Positions 5,369 through 64,000 of a stretch of 64,000 bases of DNA are shown here, in pieces (position 1 is the stretch's first letter; the number at the start of each line of letters is the position of its first letter). The notes beneath the pieces are model-generated. The model was not told where the DNA came from. It ran no database searches and was given only the letters and a program-made list of their open reading frames with translations. The stretch comes from Blastocladiella emersonii ATCC 22665. Taxonomy: Eukaryota > Fungi > Blastocladiomycota. The stretch lies in the NCBI GenBank assembly GCA_025594325.1, contig JANHCV010000009.1, forward strand, positions 1,550,001 through 1,614,000, given 5' to 3'. The position numbers were made by a program, and so were the translations under genes.

Positions 5369-8300
5369 TCACGACTCGTGCTCAACCAGAGAAGAGCCGA
5401 GCGACTCAACTTCCTGCTCCTCCTCGATTGCGTTGTGGTGCTTGGGCGCGAAGGCGGGCGCGTCCGGGTCAAACAACCACACAAACTCGCGGTTCCACTT
5501 GCCGCTCGCCCAATAATCGAGCCACTGGAGATACGTGGTCGGCGCGTGGCGCCCGCGCGCAACCATGCGGTACTCGTGGCGGAGATCCGGTTGGGTGCCA
5601 GGCGTAAGCGCGAGCGTGACCAACATTGCCACGGCGGCCACGTCAACCACGACACGGGCAAGCATCGGTGCCGCTGACTGTGCCGCGAGAGCCTGCATGT
5701 CCACAAGTAAGCTTTCGACCTGCATCAAGTCGGACAGCGAGGCCATGTGAAGGTTTCCGGTTTTCCCAAGCGACACGAATTCGACCACGATGACGGAGCC
5801 AAACGGAACGCTCTGAGAACGCCACGACAGTCGTTCGCGTAGACGACGAGGCGGCACGTTTCCAGGCCGCTCCTCGAAGAAGCCAGTTGGTTGGTCGAAG
5901 AGACAGCTGACAAGTGTGCCGGGGAACATCCACTCGTTTGTAAGCTGCGAAACCAGAGCCGTGGGTAACACCCAGCACGGGAAGACGAAGCGAAGCCCAA
6001 CTGCCCTGATGTAAAAGTTGATGAAGATCAAAAGCCGATCCACGGTGAGGCGCTTAATGAGCGCTTGCGAATCGGCCAGGGTGTCAGCGTCAAGCAACGC
6101 GACCGCGTTTGTGGTTCTGAGATTGGTCATTGGGATGCACAAGACACGGAGCACCATGTTTGCAGGGTTGCAAGGCCCAGCCGACGCTGTAGACGCTGCG
6201 GGATCGGACACAGAAGCGGCAATCTTACTCTTTCCCTTTTTCTTGGTCGCCGCGGTAGTAGCACTCTTACTGCCAAGGCTGCTGTTAAGGTTAGCAGCGG
6301 CAAGCTGCGCAAGAGTCGCATTTGGGTCAAGCAAGAGCCCATCCGCTGACGGGCGAGCGTCGACGCCTACAACGTTGCTGGGCAGCCGCAAGTACAGCGG
6401 GTTCCTCGACGTGGAAGGATGCCCAATAACTGTCGCCTCGATGGCGGCCTTGGCCGAGCTCCAAGTCGTGTCACCAGGGAATATCACACTGACGTGTGAC
6501 GGAAACCGTTCCGAGTCGAAATCCCAGATACCAGGCCCCGAATAGAGCGAGTCGATCGAGACCGTCGTCACAATGTCAAGGCGAACGGTTGGAACGTTGG
6601 GAAGGACGCTGGGCATGGTCATCTCGAAATGGTCCCACTTCAGCGCATTGCAGGTGGTTCCGCATGGGGCAGGAATCAGATGAAGCGAAGGGAGGCCGTG
6701 TTCGTCGAGATCACGCGTGAGATCGTGATGAGGTCCAGCCGTTGGCGGCGAAAGCGCGGACGAACCAGTCTCGGTGAGGGTAGGTTGCGGAAGGTAAGGT
6801 TTACCCCAGCCACCATCAACGGTCCCGGTAAACCCTGCCTTTTGGGCTGGATAAGAAGCTCAACTGCAGTGTCGGAGTCGTGACGGTACGGATAAACAGT
6901 GACATACGCCATGGACTTGTCCGCGGCCTCTTTTGCCGATACATAACAACTGGACGCGAAGTAAGCGATGTTCAGAATGTCCGCCTGGGACAGCTGGACG
7001 CTAGACGACCTGGGGTACGATCTCCGAAGAGCGTCCGCAATGAAACTGATTCCGTTGGTCCGTTTGGAGTCAAAGTCGATGCAAACAACTACCGTGCGGT
7101 TAAACGTTTTGTTACAGGGCGAGGAGCTGGCCCCATTGCAAGCCAACTCATTCGAAGCAGAGTTTGTGCGCGTGGAGTCATCCGTTGGCGAAACAACGTC
7201 GCTGGCATCAGTCGAGTGATTTGCTGAAGCATCAGAATCAACGAAAGTGCCCGAAGTACGTTAAAGTTCTGGTTCGCAGACATCCGCAGTCGCGGCGTCC
7301 AAAGTACACTCAACTGATGGCAGCGAACTGAAACCGTCGCGCTGACAATCGGAGATATCTGTCGAGCAATTTGGTCAGAATCCCGCGCGTGGATTCGCTG
7401 CCATGATAGGATCGCGTACCGGATGCATCAGACCCGCTCAAGGAATCGCCAGCCACATCGAGTGGAAAAGGAGCGGAATGCTCCGAACCCAAGCCGGAGC
7501 CTTCGTGACGCGAGTGTGACGAGTCGAGGTCCGCCAACGAAGCGGTTTGGCTGCTGGAATCCGGGGAGACCGATCGCGAATGAGACGTCTGAGAGGGATG
7601 CAAACCTGCGGCCGCACCATTGTCATCCACGGCTGTAAGGATCGGCGCGGTGTCAGCCGGTGCGGAGGGCATGGAACTTGCGGATGATGCGATTGAAAGC
7701 GATGAGGCAGAAGAAACGCGGTCGGCATCCAAATCGAGAACCAAGGAAGGCGGAATCAGACCCGAAGGCGCTGGAGCTTCCTCGTCGGCAACATCGATGG
7801 TCTGGGTTAAATCAGAATCAGGTTCCAAAACCGTTGCTGACGAAGAGGCGCCCAAGGTCGAAGCAGCTGGGTGTTGAGGTGCGCCTAGCGGTGAGAATGG
7901 GTGCGAGCCGCGCGCCACGGCAGCTGACTGACCAAGCGGCGAGGCGAAAACTTGGGCTCCCAAATCGGTCACCGGCGACTGTTGCACGGGCCACATCGAG
8001 TACCACTTCGCGTCAAACAAGCTCGTATTCACCGCTGCCGCGGCGCTCGATGGACCGTGCGCCGTGTTGCGGGGCAGCTCGAGAACTGCAGGTCGCACGC
8101 CGAGAAGCCAAAAATCGCCGGACGCGCCCGCCGCGTCGAATCGCTCCTGCGCGCGCAGCCGGAGAGTTCGTGCAAGGTCGAAACTTGCATAGTTGAGTGC
8201 AGCGAGATGCCAAAGCCGACGTGGCACGTTGAGCGCAGCAAGGTCTGTTTCCAGGACGCGAAGCCATGATGCGGGATCCAGATCGCCGAGCGCGGTGAGA

Positions 8301-8549
8301 GTTGGGACTATCAGTCGCTGCTGCGCAAAGACAAGCAGATCGAGTTCCGAGGGACAGGCAGAAGCGGAAGCGGAAGCAGAAGTGGAAGCTCTAGGAGCAG
8401 CCGCGGGCTGAGCGTAGGCTTGGGGGTAAGCGTGCTGAGGTTGAGGCGGGGGGGGCCGTTCCAAAGGAACCAGTCCACCTTGCAGCCATCGCTGGCGGGT
8501 AGCCTAGGCTATGCTGCGCATATTGCGCCGAGTCCCAATACGGTTCCAT
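5369..8549 (-). pseudogene. Disrupted paralogue of the Gag-like/USP7-UBL-like chimeric gene at 59474-62904
   Basis: ATG 8549 (MEPYWDSAQY, versus METFWDSAQY in the right copy). Lesions: an extra base in the G8 run at 8448-8455, an in-frame TAA at 7261-7263, and a frameshift near 6780-6845. A phase-1 intron 7419-7359 (GTACGC...CAG) matches the right copy's intron. Shared blocks include DLLVFAQQRLIVPTLTALGD, DLDEHGLPS, GPGIWD.DS and WASGKW.REFVWL.DPDAP. Confidence 0.8.
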
Positions 8550-10613: not shown

Positions 10614-13251
10614 CTCGATTGGTACTGACAATGATCAGCGCAACGCTGGCGCGTCACGCTCCTCTTGTCGTTTCCTCACATCACCTTGCATAACCCATCT
10701 CTCTTTGACACAACCGTCATAAAACCGAATTTTTTACGCGAACCGATTAATTGCTGGTCTCTTAGTTAACTGAATCGGGACGAGCGCGATCTATCACGTC
10801 CTGCTTCAAAGCGAACACCGCGCAATGCACAAGCGTAGACCACCAACGTTAAACTTCAAGCGACGAACCCCTTCTTGGCTTGAATAGTCATAGGTCTCGT
10901 TCGTTGTCCATTGTTCGGCGCGTGTCAGCACAGGTTTTGGGAACGAGAGAGCAGGAAGAGCGGCTCAGCTGCCAGGTTACACGGCGGAACTTTGTGTGAA
11001 TCGAGATCGATGCCACCCAAGCCGGTCAGCGGGCGGGCCCGAGCTGGGAACAACGCTCGCCAATGGCCGAGGAAGATCGAGAGCGCGCCTTTGCAAAAGC
11101 GTTCGAGAGTCAAACGGATCCGAGTTTCCAGGGGCACGCGACGGAGTGCTGTTGAGAGAGAAGTGTCGGGAAGAATGAATGAACCACTGGCCATTGTGAA
11201 GCCCGTGTAGCGAGAATGGACCGGTATGGGGACAGCTGAACTCGAGCTATGAGCCGACGGAGACTGGCGACTGTGTTGGGCGAGCTGACACTCATTCCGC
11301 TCGTCAGTCGCGATCACAAACAGCCTTCATTCAGCCGGTTGGTGGTTGGGAGGTAGACTGCAACACTGACGATGAATAAATGTGTCGGGACCAGCAGGTG
11401 CCCCGGGCTGCAACAAAGCTGTGCTTGACTGTCCGGTAGCGAGCAATCAGGAGATCGCGGCGCATAAAAATCAATGCCTTCGTCGGTGATCAAGGATCAC
11501 ACTGCATAAGGTGTTTGCATCGAGTTACATGTCATTACCGCACTTCCATGGATCGCGGAGGAGAGAGAGCAGCAGATCCGGCGGCTGGGCGATCAGGATC
11601 TGGATCAGGATCAGGACCCGAAACAGACCTACGCTGTCCCTCGTGGCCCACGTGCGCATGAGAAACGCGATTCAGTTCAGCTGCGCCCTCAGTCGACGGA
11701 ACGCGCGCAAGAGTATCAGTTTATGATGCAACTGGATAAATAGACGGCCTTGCTTACGAGCCCTCGAGCTCCGCCGGCTGGAGGTTGGCCTTACGGAGCG
11801 TAGGCGGATCATGCGACATGAGGTCCGTCGCCGCCGTCTCCGAGAGCCCACGCACGACGAGATGCTCGAACCCGAGCGGGACTCCCGCCCGCATCGCGTC
11901 GGCCACACAGTCGTCGAGATCCGGCTGCCCGCTCAGGACAAGGGACGTGTGGCGCCGCGGGAGCAAGGACATGTCTCTGGCGAGGTAGTTGAGAATTTAC
12001 GAGTCTGGCGCGGCGACAGAAGCGAATTGATCGTCTTCGCGCGTGCGGACGTGGTCATCAAGGAGGCCCCGAGATCGAGCCGCTCGACCTGTCGGGGTTG
12101 CGCGACGAGTAAACCGCCACCATTGACAGCGTTGGTGGTGCTAGCAAGTCGGGTGCCGTCCCACCCGTCGTCGACCGGCGACTGCCCCTACCTCGCCCTC
12201 GCCCACTTCGCCGCCAGAGGTCGAGGACCTGGTCTTCTTCATCTTCAAACCACCCAAGGCACCCGCACAACTCGCTGCCGGCGACGCTCACGGCGAGCCC
12301 CGCGCCGGCCGCGCTCAAGGCCAAGGTCGAGCGCGTGCTCGCCGAGTTTGACACGGTGCGAAACTCGGACCTGCATGACGTAGCTTCGTGCAGCGATTTC
12401 GGTGGCGGGCACGAGTCCACGGCGGAGATCGAGGGCACGCTTCACTGGTGCTGACCTCGCTTGGAGCGTGGAACATTGACACACGCGCGAGAGTAGCTTT
12501 CGCGACTCGGAACGGCACAGCGCTCGCCGTCCCGACGCAGTACCGCGCAGCGCGACGGGCCACGGCGGCCTGGCCATGGACGAGCCGGCGCTCGCGTAGC
12601 TGGCGGACCTGGAGTTGTCGGAGACGGCCGCGATCCTCCAAGTTATGCAGCTGCGCGTGGCCAGCAACCCCGCCCGCCACGTCTGCGGCTTTGGCCGCCG
12701 CCGCGCAGCAGGCCTTCTTCGCCAACGACAAGGTCTACGTGCCCGCGACGTTGCTCGCCGACACGCTTGGCGCTTCGTCCAACCTGTTCTGTGCTCACCG
12801 ACCTGACCTGTACGACGCGGCCGGCCCGCACGCACGGGCTCGGCGACGATCCGAACTCGGTCAGTGTACGCGCGATCCGTCGCGGCGCGCGCGCAGGCCG
12901 TGGTCGTCGACTGGGCCGCGGCGGACGAGGCGACCAGGCACGCGGTGTTTGCCGATACGCGCGCCATGCCGCAATCCGCGCCAGTACCCGCTCACCACAG
13001 ACCACGAGTCGCACAACAAGGGCAGGAGCCCCGCCGTTGTCACGGACCCCGCGGTCGCCGCGCGTGTCGAGTGCTTCCGTGCCCGAGCTTCGCTCGAAAG
13101 CTAGGCACTCGGGGACAGGGAGGCCCGCGTGCAAGGCGGACGACGGGCGGGCGAGCTGTGAGGAACAAATGCGCTGCGTCTGCTATTATCATACACTATA
13201 CACACACACTGAGGCCAAAACAAAACGGCGACAAGTCATCATCTACAACTC

Positions 13252-39903: not shown

Positions 39904-42900
39904 ATGGCTGCCCCACAACGCGTCGTCCTCCTCCCCGGCGACGGCATCGGCCCCGAGATCGTCGCGCAGGCCTCGCGCATCCTGGCGCTCTTCCCGACCC
40001 AGATCACCACCGAGCACGCCCTCATTGGCGGCGCCGCCATCGACGCGGCCGGCGACCCGTTCCCGCCCGCGACGCGCGACGCGGTCGTCGGCGCCGCCGC
40101 CATCCTGCTCGGCGCCGTCGGCGGGCCCAAGTGGGACGCCCTCGCGGCCCAGGGCAAGTCGCCGCGCCCCGAGCAGGGTCTGCTCGCCATCCGCAAGCAC
40201 CTCGACCTCTTCGCCAACATCCGCCCCGTCTACTTCCCCGCAGACAAGTGCATGGACCTGTCGCCGCTCAAGCGCTCGACCCTCGAGGGGTTCAAGCGCT
40301 CCACCGTCGTCCGCGAGCTCGTCTCCGGCATCTACTTTGGCCAGCGCGCCGAGGCTGCTGACCCGTCTGCTCCCGACGCTGCTGGTACGTTTTCCCACCT
40401 TGCGCTGCACCTCGACGAACGAACAACCCACTAACCTTCACAAAACAGCCCACGACACCATGTCCTACACGCGCGCCGAGATCGAGCGCATCACCCACCT
40501 CGCCGCCAAGCTCGCCCTCGCCTCGAACCCGCCCGAGCAGATCACCCTCGTCGACAAGGCCAACGTGCTCGCCACCTCGCGCCTGTGGCGCGCCACCGTC
40601 AAGGACATTCTCGCCCGCGACTACCCGTCCATCCCCGTCGCCTTCGAGTACGTGGACGCGGCCGCCATGCACCTCGTCAAGCACCCCGCCAAGATGAACG
40701 GCATCACCCTCACCGAGAACCTGTTCGGCGACATTCTCTCGGACGAGGCCTCGGTCATCCCCGGCTCGCTCGGCCTCATGCCCTCGGCCTCGCTCTCCAG
40801 CATCTCCACCGCGACCGGCACGTTCGGCCTGTACGAGCCCATCCACGGCTCGGCCCCCGACATCGCCGGCACCGGCAAGGCCAACCCGATCGGCACCATC
40901 CTCTCGGTCGCCCTCATGTTCCGCTACTCGCTCAACCTGCCCTTCGAGGCCGACTTGATCGAGGAGGCGGTCCGCGCCACCCTCGACGGCGACGCCACCC
41001 ACGAGCCCGCCGTGTGCACGGCCGACCTCGGCGGGTCCGCCACCACGGCGCAGGTCGGCGACGCGATCGTGGCGCGCCTCGAGCACCTCCTCGCCACGCG
41101 CCGCCGCCCCATGAACATCTGCGAGAAGATCCTCACGGACGCGGCCATCGGCATCCAACGGCCCGGCCATGTGCGCCCCGGCGACATGGTGTGCGTCAAG
41201 GTCGACTGGACGCTCGCCTCGGAGCTCACGTGGAAGGGCATGGAGAAGACGTTTGACCTCATGGGCCGCCCCAAGATCCACGACCCGAAGCGCTTCTGGC
41301 TCGCCATCGACCACACGGTCGACCCGCGCATCAACGACCAGGAGAAGCCGCGCGGCCTGATCGCCGCGTCCGAGCGGTTCGCCCGCGAGGCCCAACTCAC
41401 CGACTTCCACGGTCCCAACCAGACCATCCTCCACACCGAGTTCTGCCGCATGCGCGCCCAGCCCGGCCAGGTCATCATCGGCGCCGACTCGCACTCGTGC
41501 TCGGCCGGCAACGTCGGCGCGTTTGCGGTTGGCCTCGGCGCCGCGGACGTGACCTTGCCCATGTGCACGGGCGAGACGTGGCTGCGCGTGCCCGAGGTCG
41601 TCGAGATCAAGTTCGTCGGCCGCCCCAAGTTCGGTATTGGGGGAAAGGACGCGATCCTGTACGTGCTCGGCCAGCTCAAGCGCAACACAGTCGCCTTCGA
41701 GCGCGCCGTCGAGTACACGGGCCCCGGCCTCGCGCACCTCTCGGTCGACGCCCGGTTTGCGATTGCCAACATGACCACCGAGTTTGGCGGGATCGCCGGC
41801 GTTTTCGAGGCCGACGCCGTCACGGCGGCCTACCTCGCGGCGCGCCCCGACCACAAGGACGCGGGCAAGTACTTCCGCCCCGACACCAAGGCCCAGTACG
41901 CGGCGTCGCACACCATCGACCTCGGCCACGTCGACTCGCTCGTCGCCCTGTACCCGTCGCCCGACAACGTGGTCCCCGTCGTCGAGGTGGCCGGCAAGAA
42001 GCTCGACGGGTGCTTCATTGGCGCGTGCACCACGGCCGAGGAGGACCTGATCCTCGCCGGGCTCGTGCTCCGCGCCGGTCTCGCGCGCGGGCTCGTCCCG
42101 GCGCTCGGCGGTAAGCGCAAGGTGACCCCCGGCTCGGTCCCCATCGTCAACAAGCTGCGCCGCCTCGGGCTCGTCGCCGTGTACGAGCAGGCCGGGTTCA
42201 CGGTCGGCGTGCCCGGGTGCTCGTACTGCCTGGGCATCGCGGCCGACGTCGCCGGCGAGAGCGAGGTGTGGCTGTCGTCGCAGAACCGCAACTTCAAGAA
42301 CCGCATGGGTAAGGGCTCGATCGGCAACCTCGCGTCCGCGGCCACGGTCGCCGCGTCGTCGTTCGACATGAAGATCACGGACCCGCGCGAGCTCCTCGAC
42401 GCCGTCGACGAGTCCGAGTTCAAGCGCATGTGCGCGTTCATGGACGTGACCCCCGAGCTCTCGCCCAAGGGCGCGCCCTTCACCGTCACGGAGCCCAAGT
42501 GCGAGTGGCTCGAGTCGCAGCAGCAGCAGCAGCAGCAGCAGGCGGCGCCCGCGTCGCCGACGGGATCCGCGACCACGGACTCGGACGCCGAGGCCGACTC
42601 GGCGCCCGCCCCGCTCACGTCCGTCATCGAGGGCCGCGCGCAGGTGTTCGACGACCACGTCGACACGGACCAGATCATCCCCGCTCCGTTCATGCCGGGC
42701 AAGGACGACGCGGACCTCGGCATGCACTGCTTCGAGTTCTCCCGGCCCGAGTTCCGCGCGCGCGCCGCGGCCGGCGCGACCATCGTGGTCGCCGGCGAGG
42801 GCTTCGGGTCCGGCTCGTCGCGCGAGGAAGCCCCGCGCGCGCTCAAGGGCGCCGGCATCCGCGCCGTGATCGCCAAGGGGTTCGCCTTCATCTACAACCG

Positions 42901-43243
42901 CAACCAGTACAACATGGCGCTCCTCGGCGTCGTCGTCAAGGACGAGGCATTCTACCAGCTCGCGACCGAGGGCGCGACCGTCGCCATCGACGTGCCCGCG
43001 CGTGTCGTGCGGGTGGCGGGACGCGCGTTCCCCTTCGCCCTCTCCGACTTCGAGGAGCGCCTCGTCTCGGGCGGCGGCGTCACCGACATGTACTCGGCCT
43101 ACGGCAAGCGCCTGTTCCGCGTCAACATCGCCGCAGGCAAGAAGCGCGCGCGGATCGAGGCGGCTAAGTCGTCGTCCTCGGCGTGTGCGACGAAGACGGA
43201 GGGTGAGAGCGGCGGGTGTGCGACCGAGACGCTCGCGTGGTGA
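39904..43243 (+). CDS. Fusion of 3-isopropylmalate dehydrogenase (LeuB/Leu2) with an aconitase-family dehydratase (LeuC-like and LeuD-like domains); 1091 aa after splicing
   Basis: Exon 39904-40384, intron 40385-40448 (GTACGT...CTAAC...CAG), exon 40449-43243. IPMDH motifs: LPGDGIGPEI, GPKW..RPEQGLL.IRK, RELVSGIYFG, DKANVL, NLFGDILSDEA, EPIHGSAPDIAG. These run with no stop into MNICEKIL, DHTVDP, GADSHSCSAG, FIGACTT, PGCSYCLG, SSQNRNFKNRMG, a polyQ linker, DTDQIIP and FGSGSSREEAP. Confidence 0.93.
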
Positions 43244-55899: not shown

Positions 55900-56534
55900 A
55901 AGCGAACCGATTGCATGTTAGCGATGATGCCCGGACCAAGGCACTTGGTGCAGTTGCAGTGTGGTCAGCACCAGTGCAGGAGGGTGCAAGTCAGAAGCTG
56001 ATGAGCAAGTGCGCGGAGCTGGAAGCTCGGGAGCAAGTTAGTTGCGAGGAACTCGTATAAAACGGCGCGGCGCAGGTCGCTCAAAAGCGAGCGCTGGAAC
56101 GTCGATGGGGACGGGCTTGACGTCGGCGGCCGCGGTCAAAACGAAAGAATCGTGTCGCGGGCCGTGCACACGGCCAAGAAAGCGTTGCGGATCCGAGTGG
56201 TGGTCGCTACCGCACCAGCGTACCAAATAGGGCATGTCCAAATTCGTTGCTGACGGAGCAGAAGCGTGGCGGCACTCCGATTGGCAAGCGCGTCGACTTC
56301 CTCGTTGTCCAAGTTACCGCCGTGGTCGCGGACCCATTTGAAGGTGATCTGGAGCTCGCGGGCCGCGATGATCCAACGGATCTCGACCCACTCGAACAAG
56401 CACGATGCGTGGACTCGTGCCTTTGTGTACGGCGGGAGCATCTTGATGGCCGAGTCGGCGGCCCCTTGTTGTCGAGCGTGAAAGTGAGCTTGACGATGTG
56501 GCAAGCGGGCTGGGCGGCGGCTAAGGCTCACCAT
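55900..56534 (-). mobile_element. Degenerate non-LTR retrotransposon 3' fragment (RNase H plus Cys-containing zf-RVT-like segment)
   Basis: ITFKWVRDHGGNLDNEEVDALANRSA (56281-56345) matches the RNase H W-x-x-H...N-E-x-x-D motif. Downstream FQLRALAHQLLTCTLLHWC*PHCNCTKC lies in another frame. Confidence 0.65.
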
Positions 56535-57960: not shown

Positions 57961-58046
57961 AACTCCTTCAGAACTCCATGGAACGCGGAGAATCTGGATA
58001 AGGAAACGTTTCAAGAGAAAGGTATTTGAACAAATAGACAGTCGAT

Positions 58047-59170
58047 TCATGATCGCGAAGACGAAGGGGACTGAGAAGAGGGCGAAAAGAGGAGGACGAC
58101 GCCAATGAGGTTCACCTGGTTCTGCGTGTCGTTCACGCCGGTGAGGAGCAGCGTCATCTGGTACTTGGCTACAAGAGGAAAGCAAGGAGGTTAGCTGGGC
58201 GGGCTGGGGACCTGGCGAGCTTGGTTCAGGGCGCGCAAATACGAACCGATGGTGAAGGTGCCCTCAAGCCCGATCATGGGCAGGCAATGTTGTGCCGCGG
58301 CGCGCGTGGCGCCCGTGCAGAGGGCAACGCGCCCAAACTTGCCGGTCTCGGGGTCGACCCTCAGCGCGGTCTGCGCGAGCGGGTCGTCGGCGCGGACGGC
58401 CTCGAGGAACGACGGCATCTGCAGCAGTTGGAATGGAGGTCAATGGTGAGAGCAATGGGTCAGCCACAAGTCCGGGAGCGTTCTGCCAAATGCGAGTGAA
58501 GTACCGTTTGGAACGACGAGAGCTCGCTCCCGTACGTGTTCTCGCGGATGGCGGCGACCACACGGCCGGCCGTGCTCTTGGACACGCGGGCTTGAAGCGT
58601 AGTGTGTGCGCCCGTCATCACGGCCGACGGCGTGAGCTTGGCGGCCGAGGCCACGCTGGGCGCGATCAGGGCCTGGTTCTCGACGAGGAACTTTTTCTTG
58701 GACGCGGCCGACTTGTTGGTGTGGTCGAACAGGCTGCACTGGTGCTTGGACGCGAGGCGAACGACGTAGACACAACCCGCCTTGTTCTTGGAGAGGGTCA
58801 ACCGGAACTGGCACGGCGGGTCAGTAGCGGGGTCCGAAAAGGTGGTGCCGCAGCTACAATAGCTCAAGAGCATGTCAGCGACGAGCAGCGACCATGGACG
58901 GAGGAGGGATGGGGGCGTACAGGTATGTGCACGCCCGCGCGTTCCCACCCAGCTTCTCCCTGAGCTGGTAGCCGCTTTTGGCGGAGAGCTGGCGCACGGC
59001 CTTTCGCGCGACCTTGATGTCGCTGAACCACTGGCCGCCAACGAGGTGGTCGTTGATCTAGTCGCCTGGAAGCTCGTAATTGATTTCGAATTTTGGGTAC
59101 GCTTCGTCAATGTTCAGTGCGGGCAGTTGCGTGAAGTTTTCATGGGCGGGGATGCGTGTGGGCGAGGGTG
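58047..59170 (-). mobile_element. MULE/MuDR transposase, N-terminal part, three introns, truncated
   Basis: Introns 58920-58854, 58504-58419 and 58246-58169 give LVGGQWFSDIKVARKAVRQL...YLCG...CQFRL...HQC, then SFQTMPSFLEAVRADDP and FGRVALCTGA...CLPMIGLEGTFTIAKYQMTLLLTGVNDTQNQV. The first catalytic D is replaced by E; TAG at 59058; ends before the rest of the DDE domain. Confidence 0.8.
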
Positions 59171-59473
59171 CAACGGGGCGCCGAGTCGAGCTCGAAGGCG
59201 GTGCGACGCTCACGGACGCGCGCCGAGCTGCCAAGTGAAAACCGTCACGTGCGTGTCCTGAAAACTGGGAGCCGCAAAGTGGCGGTCCTGTAACGCGGGA
59301 TAGGTTCGCGCCTGGTCCTGAAAAGCGGGTTTTGCTCCAGCATCGGGCCGCGTCGTTCACCCGCACGGGTCCCACGTGGCGAGCGTCGCTCGGTTTCGGT
59401 TTCACGGGGGTCGCTGCTCAAGCCTCCCCGTCTTCCTCATCGCGGAGCTCCACCTTGTTTGCATGTAAAACGA

Positions 59474-62400
59474 ATGGAAACTTTCTGGGACTCGGCGCAA
59501 TACGCGCACCTGTACCAGGGCCACCCGTTGTCCGGCCCGTTGCCGGGGTGGCCTGGCTTCCAGGCGCCACCGTTCCACGGACCCTCGACCCCGCTTCCTC
59601 AAGCTTACGCTCAGCCCCCTGCACCCGTTCCCGGACCTCCTCTAACGGCTGCTCTCGCTTCTAATGCTACTTCGGATCTCGACCTGCTGCTTTTCGCGCA
59701 GCAACGCCTTATCGTCCCAACTTTGACCGCTCTTGGTGACCCGGACCCTGCGACATGGCTGCGCGTCGTCGAGACGGACCTCGGCGCTCTCAACCTTCCG
59801 CAACGACTCTGGCATCTCGCGGCGCTTTGTTACGCTGACGCCGACCTTGCGCGTACTCTTCGACTTGGTGTGCAGGCGCGGTTTGATGCGGCGGGTGCAA
59901 CGGGCGACGTTTGGCACTCTGGCTTACGTCCTGCCGTGCTTGCGTTGGGCCAGTATGCAGCGCCCAGCCTGTCGAGTGCCGCAGCGCTGGGGACAGCCGC
60001 CTTTGACCAGTACGCTTCGAACGGGTATTCCATTTGGTCGTCGCCACCGCTTCCGCAGCAACATCATACCAACCCGGCCACGGCAGCTCCACCCGTTACT
60101 TCGACGGCGGACCCCAAACTCGAGCATCCGGCGGACCCAGCTCGCTTTCTGCCTAGCGACGCGCTCCCAGGCCCTGTCGTCGCGGAGGCCGAATCGTCGC
60201 CATTTTCTAATCCCGAGCTTTCGTCTGGGCCTCCGGTGGATGACCATGATCTCTTCTCTACGACTGGCAGCGCCAACGTGCTCGACTGCGATCCCGAGCT
60301 CGTACCAGTTGGGCCAGCTCCGTTGCCGTCCGCGCTTTCTACGGATTCAGCACCCGAGCTCGAAGACGACCAGCGGTCCGATGCTTCCTCGCTGACGAGT
60401 TTGGAGAGCGAGTTTGCCGATTCGTCCTTGTCGACCAGCGCACCCGTGGCTGGGCTTACACGCCGCTCACCCAGTCCCCCGCTGCGCTTACCCTCGCCGG
60501 CAGTCTCGCTTCATTCGGACTATACTCCTAGCTTGTCGTCGCGGCCGGTCTCGCCGGCTCTTCCAGCGAGTTCCGGCTGTGACGCATGTCCTACTTCGCG
60601 TCGCGGTTCCGCGACGAGCGACGGCGCCAGCGTGGTGTCCGAGTCCCCCGCTCCTGCTTCACTCAACGGCGCGGAGGATCGCTCGGCCGAACCCGACGCG
60701 CTTGGTACGTGCCTTCTCCGAACATGTTCAATGGTGGACTGAAAATAACTCGATCGTTTCCAGACGACCTTGACGCGGAACGCGACACAGTTCACGCTCC
60801 GTCGCCGGTCGAACGCGCCTCGGGCGACGCCGACCCTGCTTGCACGGACAACTGCAACGACCTTCCGACCGAAACGGCTACGGCCGCTCATGTCGAGGCA
60901 ATCGCGAACTCCGGAGTCAAACCTTGCGACGCCAGCCCCGAATCGGCCGAGCCGACCTGTTCCGCTCCTTCTTCTGAAGAGCACGCTTGTCAAGATGCTC
61001 CGCCGACCCCTCAAGTCGAAGCTCGCGACGCTGACGCCCAACCGGCCGAACCTACGTCCTCCGCTCCTGCTTCGTACGAGCGTGTGCGTCATGATGCTCC
61101 GCCAACTTTGCGAGTCGAACCTCTCGGTGCCGACGCTCAACTGGCCAACCCGAACAGCTCTGTTCCTGCTGCTTGCCTTGATGCTCCGCCAACCTCGTCA
61201 ACTCGTGTGGTAGTTGACGTTGATTTTGAGGCCGACCACAACATCGGACTTCTCTCGATTGCGAAAGCCGTCTGGGAAAACCATCCTGATGCTTCACACA
61301 CGCACTTGACGCAAACGGAAGCAAGACACGTTACTCAGATCGCTGCAATTTCTTATAAACGGGCGAAACTGGCCGTCGAGAGCTCCGCGGGCACGGGCTG
61401 TCAAAATACGATTTCCTTCAAAGACCACCCAGGTCACACCATGGAATTGATTGTTCGGTCAATCAAGACCCCTGTTGGCGTTCCCAAGCCCGCGTCCCAC
61501 GCTGCTGCACGGGAATCTGCTGCACCTTCGGAACCGACGCCTGAGCTTTACCACGACCTCGTCCGCGATCTTGACGAGCACGGCCTTCCTTCGTTTCACC
61601 TGCTTCCGGCGCCGTGCGGCTCAAACAACGGACCGCTCTACCGCTACCACCCGTACATGGCGATGCCAGGCATTCTCCCTGACGCTCCCGTCGTTCACGT
61701 CAACCTCGTGTCGGTCATTTCGCTTGGCGGGATGTACGCTGGGCCCGGGATCTGGGACTTGGACTCGGACACGTATCCCGCCCACTACACGGCGGTCTTC
61801 TCCGCCGATACGACGTGGGGCTCGGCCAAGGCCGCTTTTGAAGCCAAACTGCTCAGTCCAGCCGCCGTATCGATGAAGCCGCTCTATTGGCGCCTCCCGA
61901 GCGGCGGCGCGGGGATGGATCTTCGTGTCTCGGCCGACGGGCTTCTCCACGACCCCAAGCTTACTCTTGCGCAGCTCGTTGCTGCCAGCGACGGCGGGTC
62001 CAACACGAAGCGACTCTTGCCGGCCAAGGGCAAAGGCAAGACCAAGGGCAAAAAGTCACAGCTCTCAAACGCTTTCGCCGCCGCTGGAAACGGCGCCGAG
62101 CTTCCCGCTAGTGGCTCCACTTCGCCTCCAGTGCTTCGCATCGTGTGCACGCCGGCGATGTGCATGACCACGGCTGACCCAGCGGACGACTTGATTTCGG
62201 GTTCGCCCTCCGTTCCCAAACCGCTCGTCAAGCGGTACACGGTCGACCATCTGCTTGTCTTTGTCAAATTCTACGCCGCACCAGTCGGGCCACGGTTCTT
62301 CTTCTCATGCCGCGTCACGCCGTCAATGCTCGTCTCGCAGGTCACGCGCGGGTGGCTCATCCCGGACATGCTTGCGGGCATGCTTTTCTCCGAGCCCTCG

Positions 62401-62904
62401 AACTACTACGAGGAGCGCCCTGGCGGCGCGCCGCCGCGCCGACTCAGCCCGCGGCTCTCGTTCCGCGCGCAAAACATGCCGTTCGGCGCCGTGATCGTGA
62501 TCGAGTTTGCCAAGCTCACCAAGCCCAAGCAGCTCCGCATGCTCACGCCGTCGGACCACATGCAGGTCGTGAGCGTGCTCCCGGCCATGCTCGACCTCGC
62601 GGACCAGCACCCGGACCCGGCGCGCGTGCGCGCGGTCATCGAAGCGGCTACCTCCGCGTTCCTGGTCTCGCTTGCGCTGGCGCCCGACATTCAGCCGGAC
62701 ATCCGCTACGAGTACCGCATGATTGCGCGCGGCCGCTGGGCGCCACCCACGTACCCCCAGTGGGTCGAGGACTGGGCGAGCGGCAAGTGGAAGCGCGAGT
62801 TCGTCTGGCTGTGTGACCCGGACGCGCCGGGCTTCCAAGGCGAGGACCCGAACCAACGGTTGAAGCTGTTGGCCTACGCCGAGCGGGACAGTCTTCCGTT
62901 TTAG
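59474..62904 (+). CDS. Chimeric 1123-aa protein: Gag-capsid-like N-terminal segment, low-complexity/repeat linker, USP7/Ubp15-like tandem UBL domains, conserved C-terminal motif
   Basis: Exon 59474-60704, phase-1 intron 60705-60763 (GTACGT...CAG) and exon 60764-62904 join ORFs 59459 and 60586 in frame with no internal stop. Paralogous over its whole length to 5369-8549. Confidence 0.75.
60931..61194 (+). repeat. In-frame 99-bp (33-aa) tandem repeat, about 2.7 copies
   Basis: Units start at 60931, 61030 and 61129: ASPESAEPTCSAPSSEEHACQDAPPTPQVEARD / ADAQPAEPTSSAPASYERVRHDAPPTLRVEPLG / ADAQLANPNSSVPAACLDAPPT. Confidence 0.8.
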
Positions 62905-63146: not shown

Positions 63147-64000
63147 ATGAAGTAAAAGAATAAGACTAACCGCAAACGCAGTGCCAAGAGCCAGGCTACT
63201 GCCCGGCCCGGCGGCAAGCCTGCCACGGTGGTCGACCCGCAAGCGTCCGCTGGGACCGCCACCGAGCCCGTCACCGCGGCGGCGACGGACCCGTCACCGA
63301 CTTTCGCCATCGACGAGCTGGCTGATCCTTACTACCCTTACGGCCGCTCGTACTCGCGCGACCTGTTCCTGTACCACGACCCGCGCGGCTTCCAGCGCAT
63401 CGACGCGCTGCTCTTCCAGTGCGGCGACCTGCGCAACGTTTCGCGCACCATCGACGAGGCCAAGCGCAAGTATGCCCGCGGCTCCGACTTTGCGTTCGTC
63501 CTTAGTGACACGCACCCCGAGGTGCTCGCGCGCAACTTGCTCGTCCTGCACGCGGTCGCAGAGCGCGGCGCCGCCGACAAGTCTGCTCTTACGCGCCACA
63601 TTGGTCAGCTCTACTATTCTCTCCTTCTTGAGCCCTCGACCCGCGAGTACTGGTTCGAGCAAATGCGCTCGTGTCTCAATGCAGAGTGGACCCGCGAGAA
63701 CGTCCCGGTTTTCGTGCTCGACGTCCCCACGCTTCGAGTCGTCCGCCAGTGCTGGAAGGCGTGGCTCGCGTGCGACTGGTCGGCCGAAAAGCTTGCCCAG
63801 GAGCGCAGCAACTTCTTTGCTCGCGGCGACGGCGACGACGGTCCCGACCACGTGCAGATCACCATCGACGATTTCATGGCGAACGCGCGTCGCACCTACG
63901 GCGACAAGTTTCCCAGCGGCGAACAGAAGGCGAAGCTGGAGCACGAGGTTCGTTCGCTTCTCAATAACGGCGCTTTCCTGTTCAATGCGACCGACGAGCT
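63147..64000 (+). CDS. DUF4470-like protein, runs off the window end; codon 3 is TAA unless a micro-intron is spliced
   Basis: YYPYG...DALLFQCGDLRNV...FVLSDTHPEVLARNLLVLH...IGQLYYSLLL matches the DUF4470 pattern. The frame is open from 63156 to the end of the window and is missing from the supplied ORF track. Confidence 0.6.

Follow-up and report, generated by a model that had tools for sequence, protein, structure and literature searches.

Ubiquitin-like (UBL) domains 1 and 2 of the USP7 type form a docking module attached to a deubiquitinase. The groove in which USP7 receives ICP0, UHRF1 and DNMT1 is an acidic cavity formed by E736, D758, E759 and D764, and this lysine-binding cavity recognises KxxxK ligands (PMC4432644, PMC4624675). 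Here we describe a gene, copy A, located at 59474-62904 of a 64,000-nucleotide stretch of DNA, hereafter the window, which corresponds to about positions 1,550,001-1,614,000 of contig JANHCV010000009.1 (assembly GCA_025594325.1) in the published genome of Blastocladiella emersonii, a fungus resembling water moulds (PMC9730499). The C-terminal half of its product is predicted to carry a domain pair of the USP7 UBL1-UBL2 fold, and no USP protease domain was found by Pfam. Copy A is probably an intact one-intron gene encoding a 1123-residue non-enzymatic protein of the adaptor type, from a tandem-amplified family found only in B. emersonii. A first-pass annotation had interpreted the locus as a Ty3/gypsy Gag capsid fused to USP7-like UBL1-UBL2, acting as a transposon-associated decoy for deubiquitinase clients. 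That interpretation as a whole is partly supported.

General structure of copy A

Two overlapping long reading frames are present at the locus (59459-60742 and 60586-62904), and they are joined by a 59-nt intron of the canonical fungal type. From the ATG at 59474 the spliced frame runs for 1123 codons (410, one split and 712) without a stop, which confirms the intact spliced open reading frame (ORF) of the first-pass annotation; the N- and C-terminal motif strings that it quoted are also found in the translations. Judged from the reading frames and splice sites, the gene structure is real, intact and of the one-intron type. Searches and folds were performed on separate exons or domains, and the joined 1123-residue model was checked by script for length and stops. 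The predicted protein consists, in order, of a Pro-rich tail, a five-helix domain, an acidic linker, an alpha/beta domain, two UBL domains and a helical C-terminal domain, as follows:

59474-60704 (+): exon 1, 410 codons and the first base of codon 411, from the ORF and splice check
59666-59959 (+): N-terminal five-helix domain, residues ~65-162, the most conserved part of the family
59960-61185 (+): linker, acidic, Ser/Pro/Ala-rich, probably disordered, containing the intron
60705-60763 (+): intron, 59 nt, donor GTACGT, acceptor CAG, phase 1
60764-62904 (+): exon 2, 712 codons and the stop
61204-61464 (+): small alpha/beta domain (M), one strand, two helices and two strands, predicted local distance difference test score (pLDDT) 56-80
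61678-62151 (+): first ubiquitin-like domain (UBL-A), from the AlphaFold model and Foldseek matches to USP7 UBL1-2
~62002-62118 (+): Lys/Arg-rich loop of UBL-A, predicted disordered, preceding the last strand of the domain
62152-62520 (+): second ubiquitin-like domain (UBL-B), in which a Glu-Glu pair and one Gly are invariant
62548-62820 (+): C-terminal helical domain, confidently modelled, ending in a conserved Trp/Arg-rich motif

Tandem Repeats Finder gave no match in copy A, and a scan for bacterial promoters and terminators was uninformative since the source is a eukaryote.

The C-terminal half and the USP7 UBL pair

The C-terminal region was studied with an alignment of 13 paralogues (A2) and an AlphaFold model (m35793913d866) made from 61186-62901 of copy A. 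The model has a mean pLDDT of 70.6 and a predicted TM-score (pTM) of 0.65, with pLDDT values of 80-95 over model residues ~160-270 and 312-545, which take in the UBL pair and the C-terminal helices. A Foldseek search of this model against the PDB returned 22 matches at E <= 0.001, and all 22 are structures of the USP7 ubiquitin-like domains (E 9e-8 to 7e-6, probability 1.0, ~290 aligned columns, 11-15% identity). The next-best matches, to plexin, FAT10, di-ubiquitin and ISG15, begin at E 2.7e-3, four orders of magnitude weaker. Normalised on chains that consist of UBL1-UBL2 only (4pyz_A, 5gg4_C, 9a0x), TM-scores reach 0.55-0.64; on chains of 214-263 residues, such values indicate that both UBL domains align. 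The model thus predicts that the C-terminal region folds like USP7 UBL1-UBL2, and the by-eye call of this pair in the first-pass annotation holds at the fold level.

At the sequence level, USP7_ICP0_bdg is the only recurring Pfam family, with 11-13 bits (best 12.8, E 0.077) for a cut-off of 27; these sub-threshold matches map to UBL-B in two of the 13 paralogues, and neither USP7_ICP0_bdg nor USP7_C2 exceeds its gathering score in any of the 13. Family profiles of the whole C-terminal region and of UBL-B alone retrieved no USP7 chain from the PDB at E <= 10, and single-sequence PDB searches returned nothing relevant. The exons of copy A have no Pfam match at E <= 1, to UCH, MATH, RVT, rve and Retrotrans_gag among others. 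A UCH catalytic domain was not detected by Pfam in the 13 paralogues. A MATH domain was not detected by Pfam in the exons or in the N-terminal domains, and the N-terminal domain is all-helical. It had also been noted by eye that USP catalytic boxes, reverse transcriptase and integrase are lacking, and the Pfam scan agrees. The exons of copy B, the second copy in the window, gave a single Pfam match at E <= 1, to Tymo_coat in one piece, and it is at chance level (E 0.053, 13.8 bits for a cut-off of 25).

The Lys/Arg cluster of the UBL-A loop is present in 11 of the 13 copies and shows KxxxK spacing in 10. In a comparison with USP7 by eye, which serves as a lead only, the Glu-Glu pair is invariant and the positions of D758, E759 and D764 are neutral or basic, within a stretch rich in conserved Arg. 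The M domain, which precedes the UBL pair, can be made out in about six copies. The C-terminal helical domain is missing in the two most divergent paralogues, and its tail alone matches the start of an annotated protein, P0009.

A multi-copy family found in B. emersonii only

When a profile built from the 415 C-terminal residues of copies A and B was searched exhaustively with HMMER against 1.84 billion representative proteins, ten matches at E <= 0.001 were obtained. Eight of these are "hypothetical proteins" of B. emersonii ATCC 22665, one is the public model of copy A, and the tenth, a bacterial repeat protein, is a chance match; no relative outside B. emersonii was found among these proteins. 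Likewise, word-based searches with exon 2 and with the alignments of the N-domain and C-region retrieved only the fragmentary models of B. emersonii itself, where public annotation cuts the genes of the family into pieces of 131-431 residues. Searching the DNA around these annotated fragments with the two exons separately allowed us to recover at least 15 copies on four contigs, and the multi-copy nature proposed by the first-pass annotation is therefore established. Besides copy A, they are located as follows:

5369-8549 of the window (-): copy B, a broken paralogue with frame changes, an in-frame stop and an intron at 7419-7359
Locus L001, contig of the window: four copies in a head-to-tail array
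Locus L003, contig of the window: four copies in an array
Locus L004, contig of the window: two copies in an array
Just past the right end of the window: one further copy
Loci L002, L006 and L007, three other contigs: single divergent copies

The three arrays lie 270-420 kb from the window. Head-to-tail arrays hold 10 of the ~15 copies, with spacers of ~250-400 bp between complete neighbouring copies. The order N-terminal domain, linker and C-terminal region is kept in every copy that is not visibly truncated, and the recurrence of the two conserved domains in the same order across copies is far more than chance. About half of the copies are intact. L003 and L004 contain uninterrupted ORFs of 943 and 1052 codons. 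For four copies besides copy A, a single intron suffices to give clean models of 1016-1141 codons; it lies where the linker ends, in a position equivalent to that of copy A. In all, six to eight copies keep frames of 900-1140 codons and the others are broken or truncated, among them copy B and at least two copies of L001.

Copy B is indeed a paralogue of copy A, as first proposed, but it is not intact. Its identity to copy A is 59% for residues 68-222 of exon 1 and 50% for residues 251-690 of exon 2 (~440 C-terminal residues), and the linkers show no similarity. The damage affects at least three places: a frame change at or near a run of eight C (8455-8448), an in-frame TAA (7263-7261) and a second frame change between ~6913 and 6763. 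Its 61-nt intron (7419-7359, GTACGC...CAG) is in a position equivalent to that of copy A. An alternative intron of 44 nt (6907-6864) leads straight into a stop and cannot cancel the frame change; since no other candidate accounts for the frame changes, copy B is interpreted as broken, and its sequence was kept without repair. No third copy is present within the 64 kb.

The closest relative of copy A is found ~400 kb away, where L001 17411-19091 matches window 59340-61006 with 82% nucleotide identity. The match begins 134 nt upstream of the ATG, passes through the intron and ends abruptly 240 nt into exon 2; this copy is truncated or recombinant.

Ratios of nonsynonymous to synonymous changes (dN/dS) were estimated by the Nei-Gojobori method for the closest pairs, with synonymous sites near saturation for many pairs, and are 0.09-0.33 in the N-terminal domain and 0.27-0.51 in the C-terminal region, all below 1. 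The coding sequence is under purifying selection, with copy turnover. A maximum-likelihood tree resolves three deep subfamilies with long terminal branches (0.35-1.05 changes per site).

The N-terminal domain and the linker

The N-terminal domain follows the Pro-rich tail. Fifteen paralogues align well over ~100 residues (alignment A3), and the AlphaFold model is a five-helix bundle with a core pLDDT of 82-91. The linker has a net charge of about -40 and is poorly conserved among copies.

The first-pass annotation had assigned this domain to the Ty3/gypsy Gag capsid. None of the 15 paralogues matches a Gag or capsid family of Pfam at E <= 10, the family profile has no match in the PDB at E <= 10, and a word-based search gave no match. 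A DEC-1_N match in one member is at chance level (E 9.2). The best Foldseek E value is 0.89 in the PDB and 0.4 among viral models. These weak matches include the capsid C-terminal domains of Ty1 and PEG10 (TM-score 0.56-0.62 on the target) and the capsids of bovine leukaemia virus, murine leukaemia virus, human T-lymphotropic virus and HIV, and collar domains of RFC, cytochrome b562 and globins rank among them. Small helical bundles commonly give mixed lists of this kind. A CCHC knuckle was not found. With no Pfam, PDB-profile or significant Foldseek match, the Gag capsid assignment is unsupported; a very remote relationship is possible.

Genomic surroundings

Apart from the two gene copies, a repeat scan of the window revealed no long terminal repeats (LTR) or terminal inverted repeats (TIR), and no RVT or rve domain was found in the window or in the called neighbours of the copies. 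Nucleotide similarity among copies extends from ~12 nt before the ATG, or 134 nt in the closest paralogue, to just before the stop; being confined to the coding sequence, it indicates that the conserved unit is the coding sequence and not an element with termini. The arrays are surrounded by ordinary genes (Rad51, ARS2, Myb, guanylate cyclase, kinases and helicases), and the centre of the window (12-44 kb) carries genes for a Na/Ca exchanger, a ubiquitin and AN1 zinc-finger protein, a DEDDh exonuclease, a protein kinase and an SH3-RA protein as well as an Iso_dh-aconitase ORF. The association with transposons that the first-pass annotation had suggested is thus not supported: the multiple copies stand in tandem arrays among ordinary genes, with no reverse transcriptase or integrase nearby.

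Several relics of mobile elements were observed near individual copies. An RNase H C-terminal relic at 56136-56534 (-), with a sub-cut-off match (E 7e-4, 20 bits), lies in a gene-poor region of lower GC content, ~3 kb upstream of copy A. At L001 438-5828 (+), a gene model has Pfam matches to MFS_1 and to a Plavaka transposase, and the truncated copy at the upstream end of the L001 array (from ~6609) is a few hundred bases from it. A TnpB/Fanzor-like ORF (PF07282) at L002 10460-11956 (+) follows a family copy by 200-400 bp, and the public model KAI9183892 joins the C-terminal tail of the family to it. We rejected this ORF as a partner of the family: it is seen beside one copy only and is taken to be a chance neighbour or an annotation fusion. 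None of the three recurs beside other copies in the loci examined.

Other observations concern the neighbouring genes. A 90-residue DUF4470-like fragment occurs at L007 14211-14480 (+), where the divergent family copy of that contig lies ~2.9 kb upstream of it; the fragment shares 59% identity with the gene that follows copy A. The 1072-codon ORF at 40025-43240 (+) of the window combines Iso_dh (138-348), Aconitase (391-780) and Aconitase_C (913-973) and may be a dehydrogenase-aconitase fusion gene. By tblastx, window 12200-13100, upstream of copy B, is similar to L005 19400-20500, the region of a GH46 (chitosanase-like) gene that lies downstream of copy A; the window ORFs at 12200-13100 have no Pfam match. 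Finally, the GC content is 65-74% in the housekeeping block (12000-44000) and 54-62% in the flanks with the family genes.

Possible function and origin of the family

In the explanation that we favour, and that we hold to be probable, the family encodes non-enzymatic proteins in which the UBL pair would serve as a docking platform for partners, as in USP7, without deubiquitinase activity. The N-terminal bundle and the C-terminal helical domain could offer further surfaces for interaction or self-association. The genes would form a host family under birth-and-death evolution, amplified mainly by tandem duplication, rather than encode a transposon protein. The proteins may be nuclear, because the UBL-A loop carries a conserved Lys/Arg cluster that resembles a nuclear localisation signal.

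Several points weigh against this explanation. Both the adaptor role and the nuclear location are drawn from analogy only. The gene model of copy A is a prediction from the sequence, and public annotation does not contain the full gene: its sense model begins inside exon 2 (61657 onward) and is spliced onto the downstream DUF4470 gene (which begins at 63201), and a 250-residue antisense model (57968-59815, -) covers exon 1. The structure model was built on a shallow alignment, the 13 paralogues coming from a single genome. No sequence-level search, by Pfam or PDB profiles, ties the family to USP7 above threshold, so that common descent with USP7 is no more than a possibility. In addition, GC content at third codon positions (GC3) is 0.58-0.78 in family copies, compared with 0.84-0.95 in neighbouring housekeeping genes, which fits low expression or an unusual origin.

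A serious rival, which overlaps with the explanation just given and which we nevertheless judge unlikely, is that of a conflict-driven or selfish family (a meiotic driver, or a factor of defence or counter-defence) whose amplification and divergence reflect an arms race. The restriction to one species among the 1.84 billion representative proteins, the mixture of intact and broken copies in tandem arrays, the long terminal branches (0.35-1.05) and the three deep subfamilies within one genome would all be expected of such a family, as would a GC3 below that of neighbouring genes and linkers that evolve too fast to align. However, domain-averaged dN/dS is below 1 wherever it was measured, and Pfam revealed no effector domain such as a toxin or a nuclease.

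Each of the three other readings is less likely than the adaptor family. It is improbable that copy A is a transposon-associated chimera of Ty3/gypsy Gag and USP7 UBL1-2, a decoy that sequesters the clients of a deubiquitinase. The fold of the UBL pair and the multiple copies are real, the N-terminal domain is small and helical with capsid domains among its non-significant Foldseek matches, and transposon relics lie nearby (RNase H at 56136-56534, Plavaka in L001, the TnpB/Fanzor-like ORF in L002). Yet no Gag match was obtained with Pfam in 15 paralogues at E <= 10 and no capsid with the PDB profile, all Foldseek E values of the N-terminal domain are 0.4 or higher with non-capsid bundles ranking equally, and neither CCHC knuckle, LTR nor TIR was found; the copies form tandem arrays, their homology is limited to the coding sequence and the TnpB-like ORF is next to one copy. 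As a further lead only, the by-eye comparison with USP7 suggests that the acidic cavity is mostly not conserved.

A related and quite improbable idea is that a retroelement since lost left the N-terminal domain behind as a capsid-like lobe, very diverged and able to self-associate, in a domesticated or still selfish Gag-UBL adaptor of ubiquitin and deubiquitinase signalling. If true, such an adaptor would serve genome defence or its own amplification, and the Lys-Gly-rich loop would be the built-in ligand for a USP7-type groove.

It is very improbable that the genes are non-functional debris, whether pseudogenes in decay or long ORFs that arose by chance in GC-rich DNA. Damage is seen in copy B and in two or more copies of L001, GC-rich DNA yields many long spurious ORFs and annotation calls only fragments, but six to eight copies have frames of 900-1140 codons with dN well below dS, folded domains are predicted with confidence and the intron keeps its position. 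That the genes are duplicates of the USP7/UBP15 of this fungus, truncated by loss of the catalytic domain, is scarcely credible: the fold match is specific to USP7 UBL1-2, but the region profile retrieves no USP7 from any organism at E <= 0.001, no USP7 chain of the PDB appears at E <= 10, identity in the structural alignment is 11-15%, the flanking domains have no counterpart in USP7, and several full-length ORFs of 900-1140 codons are devoid of a UCH domain, so that the gene is not a fragment of a UBP15/USP7 gene.

Returning to the adaptor family, the genes would represent a natural "docking module only" system, with at least 15 copies in an early-diverging fungus now under development as a cell-biology model, and one that public annotation hides because it fragments the family. 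Should the proteins bind partners through their UBL pair, they would show the reuse of such modules. The finding alone does not open a long-standing question.

Comparison with known systems

ISG15, FAT10 and linear di-ubiquitin also have beta-grasp domains in tandem and are matched weakly by Foldseek (E 5e-3 to 3e-2), at least four orders of magnitude weaker than USP7. In contrast to these proteins, the family lacks a C-terminal Gly-Gly for conjugation, and its pair sits within a protein of 1123 residues.

Like the Gag capsids of Ty3/gypsy elements, Arc and PEG10 (Retrotrans_gag), the family has close to its N-terminus a compact domain of ~100 residues made of helices only, which bears a loose, non-significant structural resemblance to single capsid lobes. 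The family differs by having one helical lobe only, with no zinc knuckle found, and by the lack of pol genes, LTRs and dispersed insertions.

The closest system is USP7/HAUSP (Ubp15 in yeast). Unlike USP7, the family is multi-copy and confined to one species, has no TRAF/MATH domain, UCH protease or UBL3-5, and bears a Lys/Arg-rich loop in UBL-A; identity is 11-15%, with no profile match above threshold. Like USP7, it is predicted to have two consecutive extended beta-grasp domains packed as a unit, whose strand pattern appears collinear by eye and which, again by eye, have in common the Tyr-Glu-Glu stretch of UBL2.

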